Of a stretch of 64,000 nt of DNA, positions 31,722 to 45,000 are shown piece after piece; position 1 is the stretch's first letter; each line of letters begins with the position of its first letter. The stretch is taken from contig DF236999.1 of the NCBI GenBank assembly GCA_000708835.1, positions 212,627 to 276,626 on the forward strand. Direction: 5' to 3'. A model generated the notes under the pieces. That model ran no database searches. It was not told the DNA's origin and worked only from the letters and a program-made list of their open reading frames with translations. Origin of the DNA: Klebsormidium nitens (taxonomy: Eukaryota; Plantae; Klebsormidiophyceae). The position numbers and the translations under genes were made by a program.

Positions 31722-34700
31722 CTAGAGCCGCTTCTTCGATTGGGAATTTATGGCTCCTAATCGATCTATCAGAGGCGGGTGCGAGAAATGGTATGTGGAA
31801 TACCAGGGGTCCAGGTTCATGGCCGACAGGTTCTCTTCCTGCAAGAAGTAGAAGTTGGCTTTCAACGTGAAGGTCCTTGTGCTTTTATGAGCACCGCACT
31901 GGGTCCGATCCGGACCAGCATCTTAAGAGTTGATTGGGAGGGACTGGTCTAGAAGCTTTTTAGCCTGTTTCAAATTGAGGGAAGCAAGGAGGTTGCGACC
32001 AGGCTCTGATGTTCGCCAAGCCGGGTGACCGGCACACGGAGAGCTCGCATCTCGACAGAGTCGCAGGGAGACTGAAGTGAGCCCTCGTACTATAAACTCG
32101 GCATCCGCACAACTCTGAGAGGGTTCTAAGGAACAGTTACGTCATTCAAGCAATTAGTTTGAGGAGGCAGAAATCCCACCTGCAAGCGGATGAGCCCCAC
32201 TTTGAGCGGCTCTGCGTACCCCAGGTGGACCGCAAAGGCGTCCGCTTGGTACTCGAATGTCCGGCTGACGATGTTGAACACGAACGACAGCGTGTGGCTC
32301 ACGGGGCCAATCACGAACTGCAAAGACAAGGACGTGCATAAGGAAAAGAGAACAAACGAAATCAGCAATCACAGAGAGGAGGTTTTTTGGGCTATATGAA
32401 AGTCGGGGAGATCGTTTTTGCTACCTCAGCACGTTCGGTTGGCGACGTCACTCGCGAACATCAGCGCTGCCTCCACCAACACGCTGGGTTCGTCTTGGGA
32501 CCGCGCACCAGCTAGAGTCAGGAGAATCGAGTTGTTTCCAGATGCTGCTTTTGAAACAGACGTAACGCACGGCTGTCACTCAAGCAGGACGATTCAGCAT
32601 CGTTCCTACCACCCGCCCTTCTGTCTGTCAGGAGCGCGCAGACTTTGGCAGTATACTCATAAGTTTCATGACCAGATACGCAAAGATTGGAGAGCTTACT
32701 CCAAACAGCAGCAGGCCGATCAGCACGGCCTCCGAGTCGAAGCCAAAGCTCTGGTAGAGAACCTTGCTGCCCTTGATCGCTTGGAAGCCGCCCATGTACA
32801 CCAGCCAGATGACCTGCCAGAAGCGGCGGTGTGAATGCCCGACGTGGTGCACTACGAAAGTTCCGGGGTGAGCAAATAGGAGCAAGGTCCTGATGCAGTC
32901 AGCTGAATGTGTACAGAAGCCGGAAAAGCACGCAGGCAGATGAGCCGAAGCCAAAGTTGCTAGGACCTGCTGATGAGACCGAGAGAGTGATCGCACGAGA
33001 CGAGCCAGGCACATCGAGGCTGAGCGCTGAAAGTAGCGACTGCTCTTTCGCCGATCAGCGCAATCAGTTGCTCCGCTCACCTGCTGAGCTAAGAACGTGT
33101 AGACTGTGTGGTTCAGCTTCCAGTGACCCTGCAGCGACACGCGGACAAGAACCGCTTAGCTTGACGACACGGCTTAGTGGCAGGATACTAAAATGTGTGC
33201 AAAAGCGTCCTAAAGCACTGATTCAGCAGTCACTGTAATTGACACAAGCGTGCGCACGAAGCCAGTCGTTGCAGCAAATCCTCTTGGGATGTCAATTCTG
33301 GTCTGTGCGACATGCTGACATGGGCGTCAAAGGGATCGAGAACGTGACTGTGATGCAATTTGGCGTACCAGCTCGTGGCCGATGACCGCAACCACCTCCT
33401 CGTCCTTCTTGCACTGCACGCAGAGAAAGGCGGCACACATGACGTCCGTAAATTCCTAGACTAAAATCAGAGAGAAGCACAGTGACTCCGCGACCGGAAT
33501 TAAACTGTCCAGAACGGGTCGCAAACTCAAGATGGAGTTGACTAAAAAAAAGCCTCGCCTTCCAGCGGCCGTGGCCTGCAAGGATCTACTTCTAATCGTG
33601 CTAATCAAGCTTCCTAGCATACTATTCCTTTTTACTACATTTTAGAAGGGCCTGGCATGTGGTCGTTTCAGACAAGACTGCAAAGCAACTTTTCGCTCAC
33701 CTGCTCGAGCAGGGTGTCGTAGAGGACGATCCGCTTGTTCTTGAAAAAGCCGTACAGGTACGCCTGTAACAGCAAGCAGGACTGATTGCATTTGAGTTGC
33801 GAAGTGGGAAACACAAAGCGAACCAGACGTTCGGCCTCAGGAACGGTCGCCGAAGCGGCCTTCGAACATCTTTCAGCGAGAGGAAGATCCAAACGCCCTG
33901 CGTGGAGGTATCCTGATTCAGAGGCTCCGTTGCTCACCCTCTCAAGAGTGCAAAAAAGGACTGCAGTCCAAGCAGCATCGTGCCGATCGAGAGCTTTCCG
34001 TCCGAAGGCTTACGTTGCTGTGGCCCGATCGAATGGATCCGTTGACAACGAAGAGCTTCTTGAGGGGGTAGCTGAGGGACGCTGCCAGCTTCTCGATCTC
34101 GGTGCGCAGGGTGCCTTCAGGCAGCTGCAAATACGGGCATGTACTTCGATAAGAAATAGCAGCAGAATCACGAGCTACTATGAAGAACGTCCTGCCCTCA
34201 CTAGCGCTGGCTTGTCCTTTTTGATACTGGGTTGGACACGATCAATTCCAGACAGCTGGCGTTCTTCCAAAAGCGAGTAGTGGTAAAACTTCGACCACAC
34301 CAGACAAAGCTTCTGGCCTGTTTGAAGGCTTCGGTAGAGATGTTCTGAAAACGAGCGGTGCCTGAGGTGAGCTCTCACGGTGCACTCACCGTTGTGTAGG
34401 TGTTGAAGAGAGGCGCGATGACAAGCGGGTAGAGGACCATCATGACCAGGGACAGCACCAGCAGGAACGCCCAAAGGTACACGGCCAGGTACGGCCCGCC
34501 GACCTGGGGGAGACAAAATGCAAAACCTTTTTCATGTCGTTGTAACATCGAAGAGAGCTGCGATACGTAAACGGTGACAGATTGTGCGATGAGTAGGAAA
34601 ACGTACACTCTGTGCGGCTTGCTCGCAGGAGCGGGGCTTCAGAACGCTCAAGTAATTTCCAGGTTCGGAGTCCAGAGCGAAGCAGACTAACTCGAGACTA

Positions 34701-36773
34701 GTAGAGCAGATATGCATGACGGCTCGGTTGGGCACTTCCTTCATTTGGGAAGGTCGAGAAGCTGCCGTAGAAGCTGTGGTTTCTCCTGATGGAAGCGCAA
34801 GCGAACGAAATGTGGCGCCAGCAATTGCTCACCTTCACAATTGTGATAATTCCGGCAATGATAGGAGGCGCAATGATTGCCGTCAGCGCATACCCCTTGA
34901 CAAGGTCTTTCACAAAGAGAGCCGGAGTTTGCTGCAAAGAATCCCCGCATGTGTTACATCAATCCTCAGTTGTGGAGTCCTTGTCTAGGATCCTGAACAG
35001 ATACATTATTGGGACACGAAGCCGTTCCGAAATCACAACTAGCTTGTTTGCATCGTCTTCTTGCCACCTGAAGCTGAGAAATGCCATCAAGCATGTAAAC
35101 CGAAGCTGCTTACAACCAATCGCCAATGGAAGTGACCATATGAGGGTGGTGCAAAGCATTCGACGAACCAACAAGCAGACAAAGTATGAAGTCACCTTGT
35201 TGAATCCATGCACTTGCTCGATGACAAACGTCGAGTAAATTGACCATGGAAGGTCGGTGACCTGGAAGGAGAGAGGCTCAGCTAAAGAATAGAACTGGGC
35301 GCTGTGTCGTAAAATCCAGAAGGAAGTGGCAGTGATTACAAAATAGTGAATCAGCCGCATGAGGAAAAAACCTTCTCTACTTGTAGGTCTCACACACTTT
35401 TGAACGGTTTGTGCCTATCGGATTCTGCAGAGTGCCAGTTAGAATGCTCAAAGCCAATCGTATTCCTGCACAAATATTTGGGGAATCTCTGGTTGCCACT
35501 ATCTTAAGGGCTCGTGCATCCAAACCCAAGTGCTGATTCTGCCCTAAACTTACGAACTGCCAGTTTAACTTATATGGACAACCTAGTATGATAAAAAAGC
35601 ATGGATCAAGTTGAAGGCGGTCACAACAACAATCCCGAAATGAGACGGAGCCCCAAAACTCTCAATAAAAACCTTTATTGAAAAAGGAGTGGGCCCATAC
35701 CTGTGACCACACAAATTGGATGGCCAGAAACAGAAGAGACTGGAGAATCTCGTGTTCTTCTGGTTTGTAACCGTACTCTCTCAGAATGTCTCCAGATCTC
35801 TGCAGGATGGATTGAGGGAGTAGTTAATGACCATGTCAGCATTCAATAACAAATCATGTGATTCTCACGAGCTTCTAGCACTTACTTCTGCAGAGAGTGG
35901 TGAGAAGCCCACACAATATAGTCAGCGCCCTCCCAGCGAAAATGAAAGTAACATACCAAAGCCAGAGAGATGGAAAGACTACTGCTATTGCATGAAAGAC
36001 ATACATTGGGTTACTCTCTATGCGATATTATCACTGTCAAGATTTTGAGAAGGAGCCCCTTACCAGCCACAGCCATGGGAGGACACCAAACAGAAGTATT
36101 GCCGTCTGCTCAATCTGCCCAACCGCCGAGTGTAGGAGGCCAAAGTAGCTGCATCACGACAGCAGAACCTCAGCGAGCGTTGATGGATGGACAAGCTGCG
36201 AAGAACATAGCAACCACACCTTAAATTCTGGTGGAACTATGTCAAATTTAGAAAGTGACCGCACTGATTGGATCATTGAAGGCGCCAGATGGACGTGGCA
36301 TACCTCTTATCCAGCTGATATGCCTTGGACTTCTCGAACTTTTCTGCTGAAACTATTCCTTTCAATTGTGGCGGCAGGCTTGGCCTTTTGAGCGCCTGCA
36401 ACTGTCGAAGGTCGAGATACGTCTCGAAAACGTACACCACCGTCTGGAAGCCTGCAAATTGCAATCGCGCAGAAAATTATCTTCAGAACACTCAATGTTC
36501 AAGACATGGCAAGCTGTTTCATTCCAAAATTTGATGTTCCTCAAACAATCTGAAGGCATGATGCATTACTGGACTGATCCATCAAAAACACCATCTAAAC
36601 AGTATCTTTCAGTCCTTCTAATACCCATTTTACGGCAATTGCATATGGGGGACTTCCAATAACATATCCATTGGAATTAATGATCACCCGTGAAGCAGAG
36701 CAAAGAGGGATGTTCGGAGCATACCAACAACTAGGTACAGCCAAGGCCAGCTTGAAAGCTGCAGCAACTCCAT
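31722..36773 (-). CDS. STE24: CAAX prenyl protease 1 (Ste24/ZMPSTE24/FACE1), M48A zinc metalloprotease (431 aa)
   Basis: Fourteen phase-consistent exons: 36773-36725, 36451-36304, 36148-36064, 35799-35701, 35261-35196, 34931-34833, 34503-34390, 34124-34014, 33763-33701, 33413-33369, 33128-33081, 32813-32700, 32317-32180, 31838-31722. Motifs STFVIEQVHGFNKQT, NAYLYGFFKNKRIVLYDTL, HELGH (HExxH), EYQADAFA and HFSHPPL; C-terminal KKRL fits KKxx ER retrieval. Confidence 0.96.
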
Positions 36774-37529
36774 TCTGTCCACAGACGGTAGCAGCCAAAC
36801 CGCGGGCCCTTGCAGACACGCAAACTTGCAACTCACAAATCCTTCTGACTGCAACTCAAGCTACTCCATGCGCGCTGCCTGACAGGACACGCAAGGCTTG
36901 AGAGGATGTTCAAGAAGCTGAGACTTTCTCGTGTACCACCACCATCAGCACCTGTGCAAACTTTATCTACGCCAAATTGCGAGGCGCCAATGGTGCTGCT
37001 GCAATGCGTGTGCATGTCGCCCAGTCCTTCAAGTTCTTGATTACTTTTCAAAAAGCAAAGAAAAGTTTGGCAAAGAATTTCCCAAAATGGCACATTTTGA
37101 AACGCTCAAAGTGCGCAAATTTGTCAGTTTGTCAAATTTGCTCCACCGCTACACGAAATACATCGCGTGTCAAGCTGCATAATGCCACATTACCATACCG
37201 TATAAGCAACGTGATTTTGCGACACCGACATGTAAACTTACAACGGAGTTTTCAGCGCCCAAAAAGGTTAAAACGCAAAGTTTGGAGGCTGGATACCACT
37301 GCCAGGCGCTTTTAATTCAACGTCATTCATCTTGCAGGCCCACCTGGGCGCCCACAATGACATGCAACTTTCTGACAAGGCAAGCTGGCAGGAGGGCGTC
37401 CCAATGCGTCCTGCAAGACAATTAAAGCTTGCTAAGCAACCTAGAAAGTGGTTTTATGTTGTGTTCAGCTTGCGGATTGGACGCAGTGTCTCATTGGTTT
37501 GTATGTCACGCTGATAAACCTGTCAGAGG

Positions 37530-40500
37530 ATGGGGCAGAAAAAGCGGAAGCCAGGTAGGACTGGAAATCAAACGGTTGGCAGCCCAAAGAATGCAGAGCC
37601 TCCGACCTTTGAGACTACTGTAAATGAGGGCAGTTCAAAGAGCAATGCGGCTTTGGAGCTGGAGACAAGTACGTTGTCAAAGTTTCTCCAAGCTGACTCT
37701 GCAGGTAAGTGTCATGAATTCATGCAGAATTGGCGCCAGTCACTTGGAAGTAAGCTGCCACGAATGAAATAGCGGGATGGGGGTTTGTTTGGGGCAATCC
37801 CTGGCTTCAAGCTTGCACCTTCCGTTTCGGGATTAAAGAGGCCATTCTTATGGGACTTCTGGGAGATTCAATACTCGTTGATTCCATCCATCTACTTTCG
37901 TCGGGCGTTTTGCCATGTTTATCAGGTCACACATCCACTCCATGTGTGCTCAGTGTGTGGATATATCAGCCTTTTTCTCCCTGAAATGCTGGGCCTATCG
38001 AGGTGAAAGGTTGTCACTCAATCTGTGCGGGTCCACAGTATTTGCATGAAGGCTCCAAGTTCCCTAGCTGTCTTTCAAGAAAGAATGCTGAGGAGCCTGT
38101 ACGCTAGTGTTCAGGTAGATATTCACCTGTGTTGCAAGAAAGCCCCGATCCCTTGCGGTGCTGTCAAAAAAGCAGTGGCAAAAAAGCGCAGAACTGCTTT
38201 TCCTTTTGGTCCAGCCACATGTTGAACAAACAGTCTCGGCACCCCTTGTAAAGCGCATTTCGCTTAACCCTGGTTGCTGTGCTATTTGCCACCCTCATCA
38301 AAGGCACGCAAGCAACCCCCTCCTATATCAAGTCCACATTGCCCGCCTGCCAAGCCAGAAATGCCTGTCACCTTGCGCACAAACTCCTCCCTTCAATTGT
38401 CAGCAGGGCTCAATCATCCAGAACCTGCTGCCAAGTGCCTTTTTCTATTTACGCTCTGCAGCGGTCCAGGAGCGCGTTGAGCGAATCCAGGAGCTGCTGG
38501 GGAGCGAGACAGAGCTCACCCTCGCGCAGCGCGCCGACTTGGTCTACAACCGGCGCCCCGAGATCCTGGACCTCGTGAGCGACCTCCAGCAGGCGTACCT
38601 TATCCTTGCCAGGCGCTACGACCACGTCGCAGGAAAGGTCGTCCGCCTCGTCAAAAGCGCAGACTCTCCGGTTCTGGACGCACCCATCCTCCAACCCCTG
38701 AGCGCCACGAAGCGCCGCCCCGCAAAGGGCAGCAACGGGAATTCTAAACGGGGGGGAGATGATAGGGCTGCAAGTGCGTCCCCTTCACCCTCAGAACGGA
38801 CGACTTCTCCTTCCCCCGAGGGCTCCAATTTGAACCCAGATGCTGTCCCCTTTGTGGCGGTCCCCCAGTCGCCGCAGCTCAATCCTGCAGCTCCGCCGTT
38901 CACACCCTCTCACCCAATCCTGACTCCCAGCACTCCAAACGGCATCAGTGCCCCGGCCCCCAACCAAAACACACTGCTCGGCAAGCTACGATTAGCGGGT
39001 GCTGATGCTGAGGGGGATCCCGAGACCCCCCGCATGAGTACGTTCCGTTTCAAGGACGTAAAGGCCAGCGGCGGGTACAACGTGGAAGAAGAAGGACCAC
39101 TGCATGCTGGCCACCTCTACGGCGATCTTTTGGGCGAAGGCCCTGTGCACGCGGGGCACGCCACCGGTTCCTGGGTGCCCGAATCTGTGTTGAACACAGA
39201 AGACCCGCTACAGGGCCCCGACATCCAAGAAGTTGTGTCGTCGGCTGTCAAAGGCGCGAGCACAGAAGCAGAGTTGGACTCGGAGGGAGAGCCGCTGCGA
39301 GACTCGCAGCCGCTGTCGGCGTTCCTTTGCGCTGCGCAGATCCAGGAGGCGGCGGGGCGGAAACAGGGCCTCTCCGACGCCCCGCGCGAGCTGAGCCTGA
39401 GCGCAGGGCTGGAGGAGGGCCCTGTTCACGCGGGGCACGCGCTGATGATCCGGGGCGCCAGCACCAAGTTCGAGCGGGAGTTGCGGCTGACGGCGCAGAT
39501 GGCCGAGGCGCTGGCGAGGGACCAGATGCAGGCACGGAAGTTTTCGGACCTGGATTCAGAGTTTGTGCTGCAAGTGAAGAAGGACGGGCAGCCGGCGCGG
39601 CCGGTGGTGAAGCAGTCGCTGCTGGAAGAGATGATCTGCCAGGACAGGGGGGCGAGCGAAGAGGACAAGAAGCAGCTGGAGGGCATTGGGGATCCGGTGC
39701 AAGAAAGCGGGCAGGTGAGGGGCTGGATACGAAGCTTTTCGGGAGCGAAGGCAAGGAGTGTGTGTAGATACGGCTCGATGGTCGCGGGTATGGACAGGGA
39801 TGAAATCGATGTTTGCAATCGAGCCATGCGAGGTCAATCTTGATCTGCTTTTGAGGTCGATCAGACAGGAGAGTGGGTGGACGAATCCCTCTGCTCTTTC
39901 TTGACTTCACGGGGCACGAGAGCTGCGCAGTCAAGGACGCCGTTCCTCGTTTATTCAAACGTTTGACTGTCTCGACCATGAGGTTAACACCGATCCCTCT
40001 CGCTCTTTCTGACCTCTTGCGTGTGGGCCTGTAGCATTCGGACGCGTCGGACGTCGAAGCGGAGCCGCTGCGGGCGTCCGTCCTGGAGGCAGAGCGGCTG
40101 CGGGGCGAGGTGAGCGATCTGGTGGCCCAAAAGCGCGAAGCCATCCGCTACCTCACGGAGTGCGTCGACGTCATCCGAGACGAGAAGAAAGACGTGGCAG
40201 CGGCAGCGGCACGCCTGGCGGCGGAGAACTTTGCGCTGCGAGAGCAGCTCGAAGAAGTTTTGGAAGCGCGGGGTGGGGGGCTTCGGGGGTTTGGAGACGA
40301 CCGGCAGGGGTGGGGAGAAGTGATTGCGGAAGCGTTGGAGTATGGGGATGTGGACCTCAGCGGGCTAGCGGAGTCGCTGAGAGCGCATGCGGCTAGTCCG
40401 TCCACCAGTAACGGAAACGGAGAGGGACGCAAAGCGAAGGGAATTGTGATTCGGGAGCCGGAAGCAGGGAGTAAGAAGGGAATAGAAAGTGGGGAATCGA

Positions 40501-40676
40501 GTGTAGCGGATGTAGCTGGGGACCGCAAAGGAAAGGGGAAGGTTGAAGAAGAGGCGCCGTTGGATAAGGGGCGGAATGGAGGGGGTGGGAAGTCGGCGTT
40601 GCAGGAGCTGCGGGAAGAGAACGAGTCTTTGCGAAGAGCTCTAGCAGCGGTAGGCGAGAAACAGAGCCGGAGATGA
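37530..40676 (+). CDS. NET (Networked)-like actin-membrane adaptor with N-terminal NAB/KIP1-like domain and C-terminal IRQ-like motif (about 689 aa)
   Basis: Exons 37530-37704, 38462-39714 and 40035-40676 (phases 1 and 0). NAB-like: LSKFLQADSA|AVQERVERIQELLGSETELTLAQRADLVYNRRPEILDLVSDLQQAYLILARRYDH, versus recalled KIP1 consensus KWL..NL.DM..KV..ML.LI...ADSFA.RAEMYY.KRPEL...VEE.YR.YR.LAERYDH. IRQ-like: AQKREAIRYLTECVDVIRD, versus NET4 AEEKREAIRQLC.SLE.YR. Confidence 0.75.
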
Positions 40677-42082
40677 CCGCTTGAGAGGTAAGTATAAGGC
40701 CAGCCCACTCCAGAAGACCAGAAAACAGTCGCGGAGCAGTACGTTCGGGTTCATTGTAACTAAACGTTAGTTGCTTGGTAAAGGTACGGTTTGATGAGCC
40801 GGTGGAGGCATGGCAGCTCCACCTCCCTAGGAACCTGTGCAGTTTTGAGAGGGGCAAAGGTTTCGAGTCGGGTTGAGCTTGACATCCGTTTGTAGTATTC
40901 AGATAATTAGACGTTGATTTCAGAAGTGCCTTTGTAAGCCCTTGCTGTACAGCGATTCAGAGTGTCGAGTCAGCTTGTATTGGGTCGAGGTTGGTCTTAC
41001 ATACGTTCTACAATGAAGTGCATTTTCGGAGTTGCTATTGTCTGCGGACGTTTGGATCTCGTAATGGGTAGCTCACAGACAGGCTTTTGTCCTAAGTAGA
41101 GAACTTGATCGGTCGTGCGTGAAAAGAATGGATTACGTCTTGAGTAGGTTGAATCTTGTCAGTTAAGTTCGGCAATGCAGAGTTAAAGAGGAGTCCGACC
41201 GCGCTTAGACTTGTTCAAACAATGGGGTGTCCTTCCAAGTCTCAGGAATCTGTTTTGCACCGCATAGTGTCTGCATGCATGCACCAATGATAATTGCAGT
41301 TCCGACATGCAATCGTGATTCACCACTGAGCGATTGTGATCAATCGTTGGTCGGGCATATGTTGACGGCTACTTCTTACACTTGATGGAATCATGTACGC
41401 ACGTGCGTGGTACCCAGTGAGGCCCGCGCGAGCAGTTTGATAAGTAATCATTCATTGCACAGTGCATGCAGCATACGACGTACGGTGTACCAATGATACC
41501 AAAAATATTATAAGACGGTTGAAGTTTTTGTATTAAGCAAAATTAAAACTCCCGTTTTAACATGAATGTCGAGCTGCAACGTCCAGGCTCGCGTGGAGGC
41601 CTACATACAAGTACCGGACCGTCTCTTGCTTTAAGTTGATAATCAAGCTGACGGTGCGAGTTTCTCTGCATTATGATGCACAGGCAAATGCGGCCCACAA
41701 CGACAAAACATTCGAAATTCGGGCCCGGAAAAAATAATGTGGCCGCATTTGCCTGTGCATCATAATGCTTCAATCGATACCCAGCCATGGCCATGCAGTC
41801 TAGATGTACGAGGAGTCGAAATTTTTCCCTTGGCGGTTGCGCGCTGGCAGTTCCTTGTGTTATGATTGACCGGGTGAAAGTGGAAACTCTTCCATACATG
41901 ATCGCCCCTCTTTATGATCGTCTCTATCAAACGGTTCTAGAGAATATGTTCGTTGGCCAGGAACCAACGTTTGACTGACAACGAACGACTCAACATATCT
42001 CCCACAACACGATGATCCCTGCAACTCGCAGCTCCAACCTGGGGGACTGCCGTTTGAGGAAGATCATACGTTTCTAAATCTC

Positions 42083-45000
42083 TCAGATTAGACTACCGGT
42101 GCGCCTGTGACCTTTGCTCGGCGACGCGGTACGCATTCCGGTGTTGCACCTTTCAACGATGTTGGCGACCAGCCGCCTTGACCTTTGCACGAAAAAGTCG
42201 CCACGCTTTTGCAGCTTAAGCTGCAAGTCGGGACTCTGTAGCACATACCTGAGAGGGCAGAATTCACGGTGGCGTTCGAGAAAGCATGTTTTCGAAGAGC
42301 CGAGTCCCGGGATCAGCACCCACAGAAGTTACCGTTCTGCACCAGAGAGCTCCCTAAAAGTTGAGCATACGTTGACATGTCAAGAAGGATGAAAGGAAAG
42401 CCCTCGGAGGCGGTTGACAATCTCCTCTCCAAATCTTGCAGCGGCGGGCCCGGCGCTCTGGAAATTCACTGGACTAGCCCAAAAACCCGCAGTAATATCG
42501 TTGCAGCAGAGTGTAGATCGTCCTTAAAGACCATCCCGCCAAAAAACTAAGTAGCAACAAGCGCAGAGGACCCATCCTGTCTACTGTAGTCTGCCCTTTC
42601 TTTTCCCAGCAGATTTCCAAGAAGAAGACAGACGATGGATCTGGTCGCGATACGGCCCGCCGGTTCTCACCGCATCTCCTCCTCGAACTCCTCCCCGACG
42701 TGCGCGCACCCCCCCGGCACCCCGGGCAGCAGCAGCGTCACGGTGTGCGCGAGCTTGAAGACGCGCAGCCCGTCCAGCGCGGCCGCGGGCGCCAGGAGCA
42801 GCTTGATCAGCCGCCGGAAGAGGGCGCTCAACCTGCGCGAGAAACAGACGGCGGTTCGCGCGAGAAAAGTGTGGAACTTGCTTGGTGCAGCCCTTGGCGG
42901 GCTACAGCGACGATACGAAACGGGCGGAACAGCGAGCTTGCCGCGTTGCCGGACGAATGTAAGTTTCACAAGCTCTGCTTTGACAGGCTAGAAACGAGAA
43001 TGCGAAGGATTAGAGTCTGTTGCACTTTATCTCTCGCAAACAACTGGCACGGTTCAGAATCCCAAAGAAAAGTTGCCCTTCAATTTCTGACTCTCTAAGA
43101 CGAAGTTCGTACGGGCGAGCGAGTCGTTACAGTCGATGCCAAGAGGATCCTTCGATTGCAGTCCATCCAACGACGGCCCATATAATCACCCTCAATCGTG
43201 CACATTCGCGCGCTCCAGCAAATCAAGCTCGCGCAATCTAGTTTCGACCAATCTGCCCCACCTCTTCCGCAGCGCAGGCTCGGGCGCTTTCCTGAGCGCC
43301 CACAGGACGAAGTCCGGTTCCGGCGCGGCCCCCGCCAGGAACGCGTGCTGGCCCAGGCTGTCGGCCTCGAACAGCAGCGCGGCCGCGAGGTCAACCGCGG
43401 CCGCCTCTTGCAACGCGCCCCGCGTGACCGCCTGCCAGGGTTTGGGGTTTTCGATTCAATTAAGGCGGTGGAAAGTGGGGTGTTGAGGGGTCTCGCTTCG
43501 AACTTGCAAAAGCAAGTTCGAGCGTTGGGGACGCAAGTTGGAATGGACAGCGTAATGCAAATGCGCCGAGCCAATGCAGAAAGGAGTCTGGCGTCCAGAC
43601 CTGAAAGGTCTCGTCAGCAGCGACTGGACGAAAGAACTGATAGACCTCCCCGGGCCACGAGAAAGGGAAGCAGCGCAAGTCTGGCGAGAGGACTGCGCGG
43701 TTCGATTCGATGTAGGCCCGACGGGAAGACAAACCCGCTTTGTCCGCTTCTATCAAGAAACCTGATCATGCATTTCGTGGTCAAGGGCGCACCTGTTGCT
43801 TTGGGCTGCCGTGGGATGCGATCGGAGCCGTTGACGGGTCCAGCCGCTCGAGAAGGAAGACGTCGACCAGGAAGGTGTCCAACGAGTGCGGGCTGTAACG
43901 ACGACACGCAAAACTTGGTACAAGTCTTCAAGGAGGACCCCACAAAAGGCCAACAATGCAAAAGAGGTTTGTCTGCAAGGCGTTCTGCGCAAGCAACCTA
44001 ACATCCTTGCACGTGCGCTTTGGTGCTTTGTGAAACTGTGAGGCGATGCGGCAGGGATGTACGCGCCAGCGGCTGCTAATGACTCCACCTTTCTGACGGC
44101 TTAACCGTCGAGCAAGCCACGCAACAGATAGGCCTGAAGCTTACTGTGACTTCATCCCCAAGATCACGCCAAACGGGCCTAACTACGTCTCAGCTTCAAG
44201 CACTTAGGGCGCAAATTGCGCACCGTAAACCACGACCAATAACCATAAGTGCCTACCTGGCGACGTTCATGAGGTTGAGCCGCGAGGGGATCCCCTCGCT
44301 GTTGCTCAGCACCCGCTGCACACAGTCCACAATCCGCAGCACGTTCCCGCCCGCGCGCGCTTGCCCCAGCCGCCGCAGCAGCCACTCCCATCGCAATACG
44401 ACAGCCGGGTCCGGTTCATAACTCCTCTCCACACTAGCTCTTTCGACCCGTCTGCGGTTGGCCCCCCGGGTGACGTCGTCCCGAGGAAGCGGCCCGCTTA
44501 TTCTCCTCCGGTCCTGCTGTGACGTCAGCATGACGTCGTCTTCCCGGAGTTGCGAGGGGTCTGTGGAAGCCCTCGGTCGAGTGGACGGTTTTGCGGTTGT
44601 CTGGCGGAAGCTTGAAGAGTGTGAGAGTTTGGGAGAAGGGGGAGGAGGCGCGATGTCGATGCGCTTGGTTGCTTGGGCCAGCCAGAGGCGAAAACTGCCG
44701 GCCAAGAATCTGAACAGGACGTCGCTCTGCAAAAGCCGCAAAAATGCGCCTCGATGAGTCTTTGCTGTCAAGCACTTTCGTTTTTCCCTTTCCCTGTTTA
44801 CGCAGAGGTTTGACTTCACGGCAAATCACGTCGAGGAACAGACTGGCAGTACAAGCAGACCCGAAGCTCCTGCAAACTGGACATTTGCGAGAGACTTTCA
44901 TCTTGCTGAGAATGACGGGTGCCGCATCGACGCAGCGGCGGGACACTCGGTCGAGAGTCCTCTTCCAAAGCGGGGAGAATGGGTGAAAGAAAAGGAATCG

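Follow-up and report, generated by a model that had tools for sequence, protein, structure and literature searches.

Does a streptophyte alga possess a NETWORKED (NET) protein, that is, a member of the family of the main plant-specific actin-membrane adaptors? The question is raised by a single gene in a 64,000-nucleotide stretch of the Klebsormidium nitens genome (GenBank assembly GCA_000708835.1, contig DF236999.1, positions 212,627 to 276,626 of the forward strand; this whole stretch is referred to here as the window, and all positions are given in its coordinates). The gene occupies positions 37530-40676, and an earlier reading of the DNA, made before any database search, had described it as NET4-like, with a NAB domain (Pfam family KIP1) and an IRQ-like motif, in what appeared to be an algal genome. 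The sequence-only reading had also stated that published surveys placed the origin of NET proteins at the base of the vascular plants. The literature says as much: the survey by Hawkins et al. (2014), the only published evolutionary survey of the NET family that we found, reports NETs as absent outside tracheophytes and relates the rise of the family to the cell biology of vascular plants. Its sample of genomes did not include Klebsormidium. The explanation that we favour, with moderate confidence, is that the gene, KFL_000500510, is a transcribed and spliced gene for a divergent member of the NAB-domain (KIP1/NET) family, and that its product is a true NETWORKED homologue with a NET4-like layout. 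The order of parts is that of NET4: NAB-type helices (amino acids [aa] ~47-118), a largely disordered middle, and a C-terminal helical region with an IRQ-like core (aa 496-528).

The gene lies on the plus strand and has three exons, whose spliced product is 689 aa long. Exon 1 (37530-37704) covers aa 1-58 and extends to the first base of codon 59. The peptide that it specifies opens with a basic patch (MGQKKRKPGR), continues as a disordered leader, and closes with the start of the NAB-like domain, LSKFLQADSA (37674-37703). Directly behind that start, one base after the Ala58 codon, comes intron 1 (37705-38461; 757 nucleotides [nt], GT..AG, phase 1), with the donor GTAAGT at 37705. Exon 2 (38462-39714) is followed by intron 2 (39715-40034; 320 nt, GT..AG, phase 0) and exon 3 (40035-40676, stop codon included). 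RNA-derived contigs from four public runs, each from a different study, were aligned to positions 37400-40900 (3,501 letters). Both introns are skipped, and both splice joints occur in contigs of all four runs, with GT..AG ends and zero sequence differences; the joints as reported by the alignment lie at 37696 to 38454 (cut +8) and at 39712 to 40033 (cut +2). At a G-rich stretch of exon 3 (~40270-40312), the contigs of all four runs stop and resume, leaving gaps of 15-90 nt, and no single contig spans exon 3 across it. Because the reading frame is conserved in two orthologues, this gap is probably an assembly break rather than a splice. Low-depth contigs were also seen over the introns (37751-38452 and 39740-39973), at a word depth of ~2.6-4.7 compared with ~100-230 on the exons. 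This coverage is limited to run X1 (parts of both introns) and run X5 (intron 1) and is consistent with traces of unspliced pre-mRNA or with DNA in those libraries.

Along its whole length, exon 2 shows 100% identity to the NCBI entry “hypothetical protein KFL_000500510 [Klebsormidium nitens],” a protein of 689 aa, which is exactly the length predicted by the splice model. The identity also settles the organism, which the sequence-only reading had supposed to be a charophyte. The domain itself is already known to automatic database annotation, since UniRef names the protein “NAB domain-containing protein.” Two relatives were found in metagenome or run assemblies, P0002 (88% identity; locus L006, 5001-6317) and P0003 (63% identity; locus L005, 5001-6311). 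Both are prokaryote-style gene calls that cover the exon-2 orthologue only and run into the intron, and protein-level searches therefore miss the orthologues' exon 1 and IRQ-like exon 3. On the DNA level, L005 and L006 are collinear with the window over ~11 kb, neighbouring genes included. Similarity to L005 takes the form of short, separate blocks, which sit on the exons inside the NAB gene. L005 and L006 are true orthologous loci, and the NAB domain, the IRQ-like core, and the PAM2 and HAGH motifs discussed below are all kept in them.

Is the NAB domain genuine? Its main part (38462-38640, plus strand, aa 59-118) runs through RRPEILDLV to ARRYDHVAGKV, and the KIP1/NAB-like helix set that the sequence-only reading had placed at 38462-38625 does end with RYDH at exactly 38625. 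The Pfam KIP1 profile (PF07765) matches the full protein at 38.8 bits (E value, 1e-9), exceeding the gathering score of 33.9. The alignment pairs aa 47-112 with positions 10-74 of the 74-position profile, and exon 2 by itself scores 32.2 bits. For the reciprocal direction, an exhaustive phmmer search was run with aa 30-130 as the query against 1.84 billion representative proteins. It gave 84 matches at an E value of ≤1e-3, all falling on NAB domains and nearly all at residues ~20-95, the canonical N-terminal position of the NAB. Both the profile comparison and the reciprocal search, which had been proposed as checks, thus bear out the assignment. Thirty of the 84 matches, a selection that took in every atypical one, were looked up. 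An organism is named for 27 of them, in every case an angiosperm, Ginkgo, or a fern, and many of these proteins are called NETWORKED 1A-, 2D-, 3A-, 3C-, or 4B-like, kinase-interacting, or NAB-domain proteins; the other three clusters are unnamed run assemblies. Several angiosperm proteins (P0004-P0008, from Paulownia, Syzygium, Brassica, and Typha) contain two or three tandem NAB domains each. They head the match list because the scores of the copies add up, and these gene models may be annotation fusions of tandem genes or real duplications.

Residue by residue, the resemblance is extensive. Of the columns with ≥90% conservation across 49 canonical NABs, 27 could be reliably aligned, and at 15 of them the alga has the conserved residue (S, K, L, A, Y, RPE, Y, LA, and RYDH among them). 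Several other columns show conservative replacements, such as Phe for Trp (in SKFL), Glu for Asp, and Leu for Phe. An AlphaFold model of aa 30-135 is helical, with a mean predicted local distance difference test (pLDDT) score of 79. Structure neighbours of the NAB part in the ESM Atlas comprise KIP1 clusters at template modelling (TM) scores of 0.63-0.68 and generic bacterial helical hairpins at 0.72-0.77; as the generic hairpins fit equally well or better, the fold comparison does not discriminate. No solved structure of any relative was found. The good fit of the hairpins is what one would point to in arguing that the resemblance is a chance similarity of amphipathic helices and that no NAB domain is present. 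That explanation must contend with a Pfam score over the curated threshold, with 84 significant reciprocal matches, each of them to a correctly positioned NAB domain, with the 15 identical columns (RRPE and RYDH among them), and with the intron described next; we give it hardly any chance. Homology of the NAB domain we regard as firm.

The intron that interrupts the domain offers evidence of a different kind. Four land-plant NET proteins, namely a Cuscuta NET4-like, an Adiantum NET4-like (P0022), an Ipomoea NET3C-like, and a Typha NET2D-like protein, were mapped exactly onto their genomic loci. In all four genes, the codon immediately after the nine residues SKWLQxxLx is interrupted by a phase-1 intron. 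Intron 1 of the algal gene, in the codon after SKFLQADSA and likewise in phase 1, occupies the same aligned codon, in agreement with the sequence-only reading, which had pointed to such an intron in land-plant NET genes. Both LSKFLQADSA and the GTAAGT donor are kept in L005 and L006. Since an intron identical in position and phase over such a distance is hard to explain otherwise, we take it as a sign of common descent; as a criterion, the shared NAB intron was observed in this analysis and is no part of a published family definition.

If the domain is genuine, how complete is it? Canonical NAB domains begin with WWW..SH, and Hawkins et al. (2014) count W15-W17 and H20 among the positions at which all Arabidopsis NETs agree. 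The sequence-only reading had reported this start as missing, and it is. There is no Trp in aa 1-60, and an in-frame TAA at 37515-37517, five codons 5′ of the ATG, leaves exon 1 no room for a W-rich segment further upstream. Nor do the WWW and the following His have a counterpart in the two orthologous loci, whose products start with MG[QN]KK and, up to and including LSKFLQADSA, have no Trp. The absence of the WWW is thus real and old within the Klebsormidium-type lineage. A similar condition exists in angiosperms: KIP1 aligns to an At1g48405-type protein of Punica granatum (P0053), which is NAB-like and has no tri-tryptophan, likewise from profile position 10 only. The WWW-less, “NAB-like” At1g48405 group was used by Hawkins et al. 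(2014) as an outgroup and kept out of the NET family. P0053 differs from the algal protein in its higher KIP1 score (54.6 bits), in its score on the IRQ profile introduced below (2.6 bits), and in having no PAM2 or HAGH patterns. Judged from its residues, the algal NAB might or might not bind actin with the Trp cluster gone, and we would not lean to either side.

The second element of a NET4-like protein is the IRQ motif. In the algal protein, KREAIRYL is encoded at 40131-40154 (aa 509-516), exactly where the sequence-only reading had placed it. The octamer belongs to an IRQ-like core (40092-40190, plus strand, aa 496-528) inside a long predicted helix (aa 480-555; pLDDT, 90-98). Twelve proteins among the NAB matches have KRE[AV]IRQL near the C-terminus, and beyond the octamer, the alga also fits the land-plant pattern ...[IV]D-x-[LI]-R-D-E.... 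A profile hidden Markov model (HMM) built from nine land-plant IRQ regions matched the algal protein at aa 496-528 with 13.3 bits (E value, 2.8e-6 at Z=1, a one-protein search). None of 20,000 shuffles of the whole protein (maximum, 10.0 bits) and none of 20,000 shuffles of the C-terminal part (maximum, 11.6 bits) reached this score. The highest score among 41 long coiled-coil proteins of the NET1/2 type (53,927 residues) is 3.4 bits, and the remaining proteins without an IRQ reach at most 5.2 bits. True IRQs score 16.5-61 bits, including variant IRH, IKQ, and IKE forms that were missed by a regular expression. When three Klebsormidium C-termini were compared with twelve land-plant IRQ regions, hhalign returned a probability of 78.8% (E value, 1.7e-5) over 43 columns in the expected register, and the four invariant IRQ columns K, E, I, and L are present. 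The segment AQK[KR]EAIRYLTECVDVIR is invariant in the orthologues, though exon 3 is just ~54% identical in L005, and the IRQ-like segment is the best-conserved island of that exon. A weak second match, to the distal part of the IRQ profile, lies at the conserved C-terminal region (1.3 bits). The claim of an IRQ match is therefore upheld in part: it withstands 40,000 shuffles and the profile-profile alignment, but the algal score lies below that of every true IRQ, and the tail is lacking. Confidence that the IRQ-like core is homologous to the IRQ of NET3 and NET4 is moderate, with the balance slightly in favour of homology.

Among known proteins, NET4A, NET4B, and the NET4-like proteins of ferns, Ginkgo, and Selaginella resemble the algal protein the most closely in layout. 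They share with it an N-terminal NAB/KIP1 domain with the same phase-1 intron, a helical C-terminal part in which K-R-E-A-I-R-x-L ... D-x-[LI]-R-D-E aligns in register with the IRQ, and a moderate size (~400-560 aa for the NET4-like proteins and 689 aa for the alga). Several differences weigh against counting the algal protein among true NETs. Within the NAB, Leu→Ser57, Arg→Leu105, and Glu→Arg109 are nonconservative changes at conserved positions, the tri-tryptophan and His that are invariant according to Hawkins et al. (2014) are absent, and the KIP1 score of 38.8 bits is far under the 114-130 bits of canonical NET4-like proteins. In the IRQ-like core, the eponymous Q is replaced by Y (IRY for IRQ), and 13.3 bits, although clearly over background, is less than the score of the weakest accepted IRQ (16.5 bits). 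The algal core is also internal, 173 residues from the C-terminus compared with 25 to ~90 in the land-plant proteins examined, and it is followed by no counterpart of the NET4 C-terminal tail; a word-based search with the C-terminal region matched nothing beyond itself. The algal protein differs further in its additional motifs (PAM2-like and EGPxHAGH) and in a leader of 46 aa that is basic or disordered, and its host, a streptophyte alga, stands outside the published range of the NETs. Lastly, no other streptophyte alga or bryophyte surfaced, in what was one single-sequence search at a high significance bar with 30 of 84 matches looked up, through which divergent relatives could escape; the patchy distribution consequently rests on one algal class.

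In NET4, the tail matters for function. In published work on NET4B, the minimal RABG3-binding piece is aa 464-511, and published NET4 work shows that the IRQ plus the C-terminus is needed for RABG3 binding and for the tonoplast signal. Because the IRQ similarity is modest and the tail needed for RABG3 binding is missing, we do no more than infer actin-vacuole tethering by the algal protein. Binding of Rab7 by its IRQ-like helix is a moderately plausible hypothesis.

These same observations could be accommodated if the protein, although genuinely NAB-like, were no NET4-type tether and its IRQ likeness were a coincidence of charged coiled-coil helices. It would then be comparable to the At1g48405 group and might, for example, link poly(A)-binding-protein-bound messenger ribonucleoproteins, or a partner of its EGPxHAGH motifs, to the cytoskeleton or the nucleus. 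An IRQ-like score below those of all true IRQs and the absent tail agree with this, as does a KIP1 match that starts at profile position 10 exactly like that of P0053, and the N-terminal KKRK patch resembles a nuclear-localisation signal. Further points in its favour come from two conserved parts of the protein that lie between the NAB and the IRQ-like core. The first is a tandem pair of PAM2-like motifs, SNLNPDAVPFVA (aa 180-191) and PQLNPAAPPFTP (aa 196-207), encoded at 38824-38907 on the plus strand, with the cores LNPDAVPFVA and LNPAAPPFTP. They are conserved islands amid a variable region of the disordered middle. The Pfam PAM2 family, named for the ataxin-2 C-terminal region, includes Paip1/2, plant CID proteins, and ERD15, and in known proteins, its motifs are ligands of the MLLE domain of poly(A)-binding protein, a disordered region being the usual context of such MLLE-binding peptides. 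Like these proteins, the algal protein has motifs of the LNPxAxxFxP type, two of them in tandem, in a disordered region. Its own score is borderline (17.5-19.2 bits against a cutoff of 20), whereas the orthologues P0002 and P0003, with two motifs each, exceed the cutoff at 22.1 and 23.3 bits. To our knowledge, no other PAM2 protein has a NAB domain, and a link to poly(A)-binding-protein-bound messenger ribonucleoproteins through PAM2 has not been described for any NET. From their sequence, the two conserved motifs suggest a plausible extra link to poly(A)-binding protein via MLLE.

The second part is a conserved central region without a known family (39016-39525, plus strand), which contains DPETPRMSTFRFKD, three EGP[LV]HAGH motifs (39085-39114, 39133-39159, and 39412-39438), QPLSAFLCAAQIQEAAG, and GASTKFEREL. 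Many of its columns are invariant over the three orthologues, which are 63-88% identical overall, and the HAGH motif varies among orthologues to HAGY, HSGH, and HDGH. No relative of the region or of its motifs was found in Pfam or the Atlas, and neither PAM2 nor HAGH patterns occur in the fetched phmmer-match proteins. Most of the middle of the protein is disordered (the whole-protein Atlas model has a mean pLDDT of 0.44 on a 0-1 scale), and ESM Atlas look-alike searches with the middle and C-terminal parts gave nothing usable. A conserved central region without a land-plant counterpart is, like the conservation of the PAM2-like motifs, compatible with a role other than tethering.

Set against that account are the register and length of the IRQ-like match (43 columns, P of ~1e-5 to 1e-6), the standing of the segment as the best-conserved island of exon 3, and its place downstream of the NAB, as in NET3 and NET4. 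The algal NAB, moreover, has a raw score of 45-47 bits against the fern and Ginkgo NET4-like proteins compared with 36.7 against P0053. We therefore hold a coincidental IRQ in a nontethering protein to be possible but less likely, and we retain the divergent NET homologue with a NET4-like layout as the preferred explanation.

Could the gene have come from elsewhere? Horizontal transfer from a vascular plant, or contamination of the assembly, would deprive the gene of any bearing on the age of the family. The patchy distribution is what such an origin would leave: among the named or looked-up phmmer matches, the only NAB outside the tracheophytes is that of the Klebsormidium-type P0003. Word-based searches with exon 2, with the C-terminal region, and with the NAB region recovered only the three Klebsormidium-type proteins; because that method needs shared 5-mers, the result is uninformative on distant kin. 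The gene, however, is part of a K. nitens contig of 276 kb, its introns are local, and runs of four studies show its expression. In two related genomes, it is found among the same neighbouring genes, and the proteins are 63-88% identical. Its architecture (no WWW, with PAM2 and HAGH motifs) matches no land-plant NET among the matches. A quick maximum-likelihood tree of 80 NAB domains, built from 69 columns and poorly resolved, places the Klebsormidium pair, which has a long branch (1.55), beyond the 78 tracheophyte NABs taken together rather than within any donor lineage. On the tracheophyte side, the IRQ-bearing NET3/4 types form a basal grade, within which the long NET1/2 types are nested. 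This pattern fits deep vertical descent and argues against a recent transfer from a plant lineage. Transfer or contamination is accordingly very unlikely in our estimation.

If the protein is a divergent NET with a NET4-like layout, it may be pictured as a helical, probably dimeric adaptor whose long helices dimerise. Actin filaments would be bound by the NAB helices, whose grip may be weaker or of another kind without the Trp-rich start; a partner, for instance Rab7 in its GTP-bound form, would be recruited through the IRQ-like helix; and the PAM2-like motifs would add a connection to the MLLE domain of poly(A)-binding protein. On the evolutionary side, an expressed algal NAB gene with the shared intron would place the origin of the domain, probably already accompanied by an IRQ-like helix, before the Klebsormidiophyceae split from the land-plant lineage. 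The NAB would later have been lost in bryophytes or have diverged there past recognition. The NET family thus probably arose before the colonisation of land, as the sequence-only reading had proposed for a charophyte host. Many families once held to be land-plant specific have been traced to Klebsormidium, which tempers the finding. A bolder version is that the complete NET4 module, with an actin-binding NAB and a Rab7-recruiting IRQ, was working in prelanding streptophyte algae and was lost in bryophytes, and that the ancestral protein, through PAM2 motifs, tied mRNA-protein complexes bound by poly(A)-binding protein to actin or endomembranes; this we offer only tentatively and think doubtful. 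Two matters become testable with the algal protein: as a natural NAB variant without the tri-tryptophan, it can reveal which part of the NAB binds actin, and it can show whether the IRQ-Rab7 link is ancient.

With respect to earlier work, no paper was found that describes an algal NET, none that deals with bryophyte NETs, and none that treats the NAB domain in algae (Hawkins et al. [2014] excepted) or in Marchantia. No paper cites KFL_000500510, and the IRQ-domain papers that were found concern Arabidopsis. A literature search from 2015 on for NET proteins, actin, and tracheophytes returned nothing, and a review from 2025 that deals with NET and VAP27 proteins nowhere uses the words evolution, algae, bryophyte, moss, Klebsormidium, or tracheophyte. 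What is new here is a WWW-less, PAM2-bearing NAB protein from a streptophyte alga, beyond the published taxonomic range of the family.

Some smaller features of the gene and its surroundings complete the description. After the start Met, the product has the basic stretch GQKKRKPGR (37533-37559), and the orthologues keep MG[QN]KK[RK]. By its composition, the patch looks like either a nuclear-localisation signal or a membrane-binding polybasic patch. N-terminal myristoylation of MGQKKRK was considered and dropped: the Arg at the fifth position after the Gly does not suit the PROSITE N-myristoylation pattern, and a patch resembling a nuclear-localisation signal would be the simpler reading. At the other end, a conserved C-terminal helix, LQELREENESLRRALAA (40599-40649, plus strand; the remaining residues and the stop extend to 40676), is invariant in L005 and L006, and the terminal helix of the model covers aa 664-688. 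Upstream of the NAB gene, minus-strand gene calls with Peptidase_M48_N matches are found in L005 (1-3420) and L006 (197-3500), and the corresponding part of the window (~33400-36950) probably contains a syntenic gene for an M48-type protease. Another conserved gene lies downstream, at ~41950-44540.

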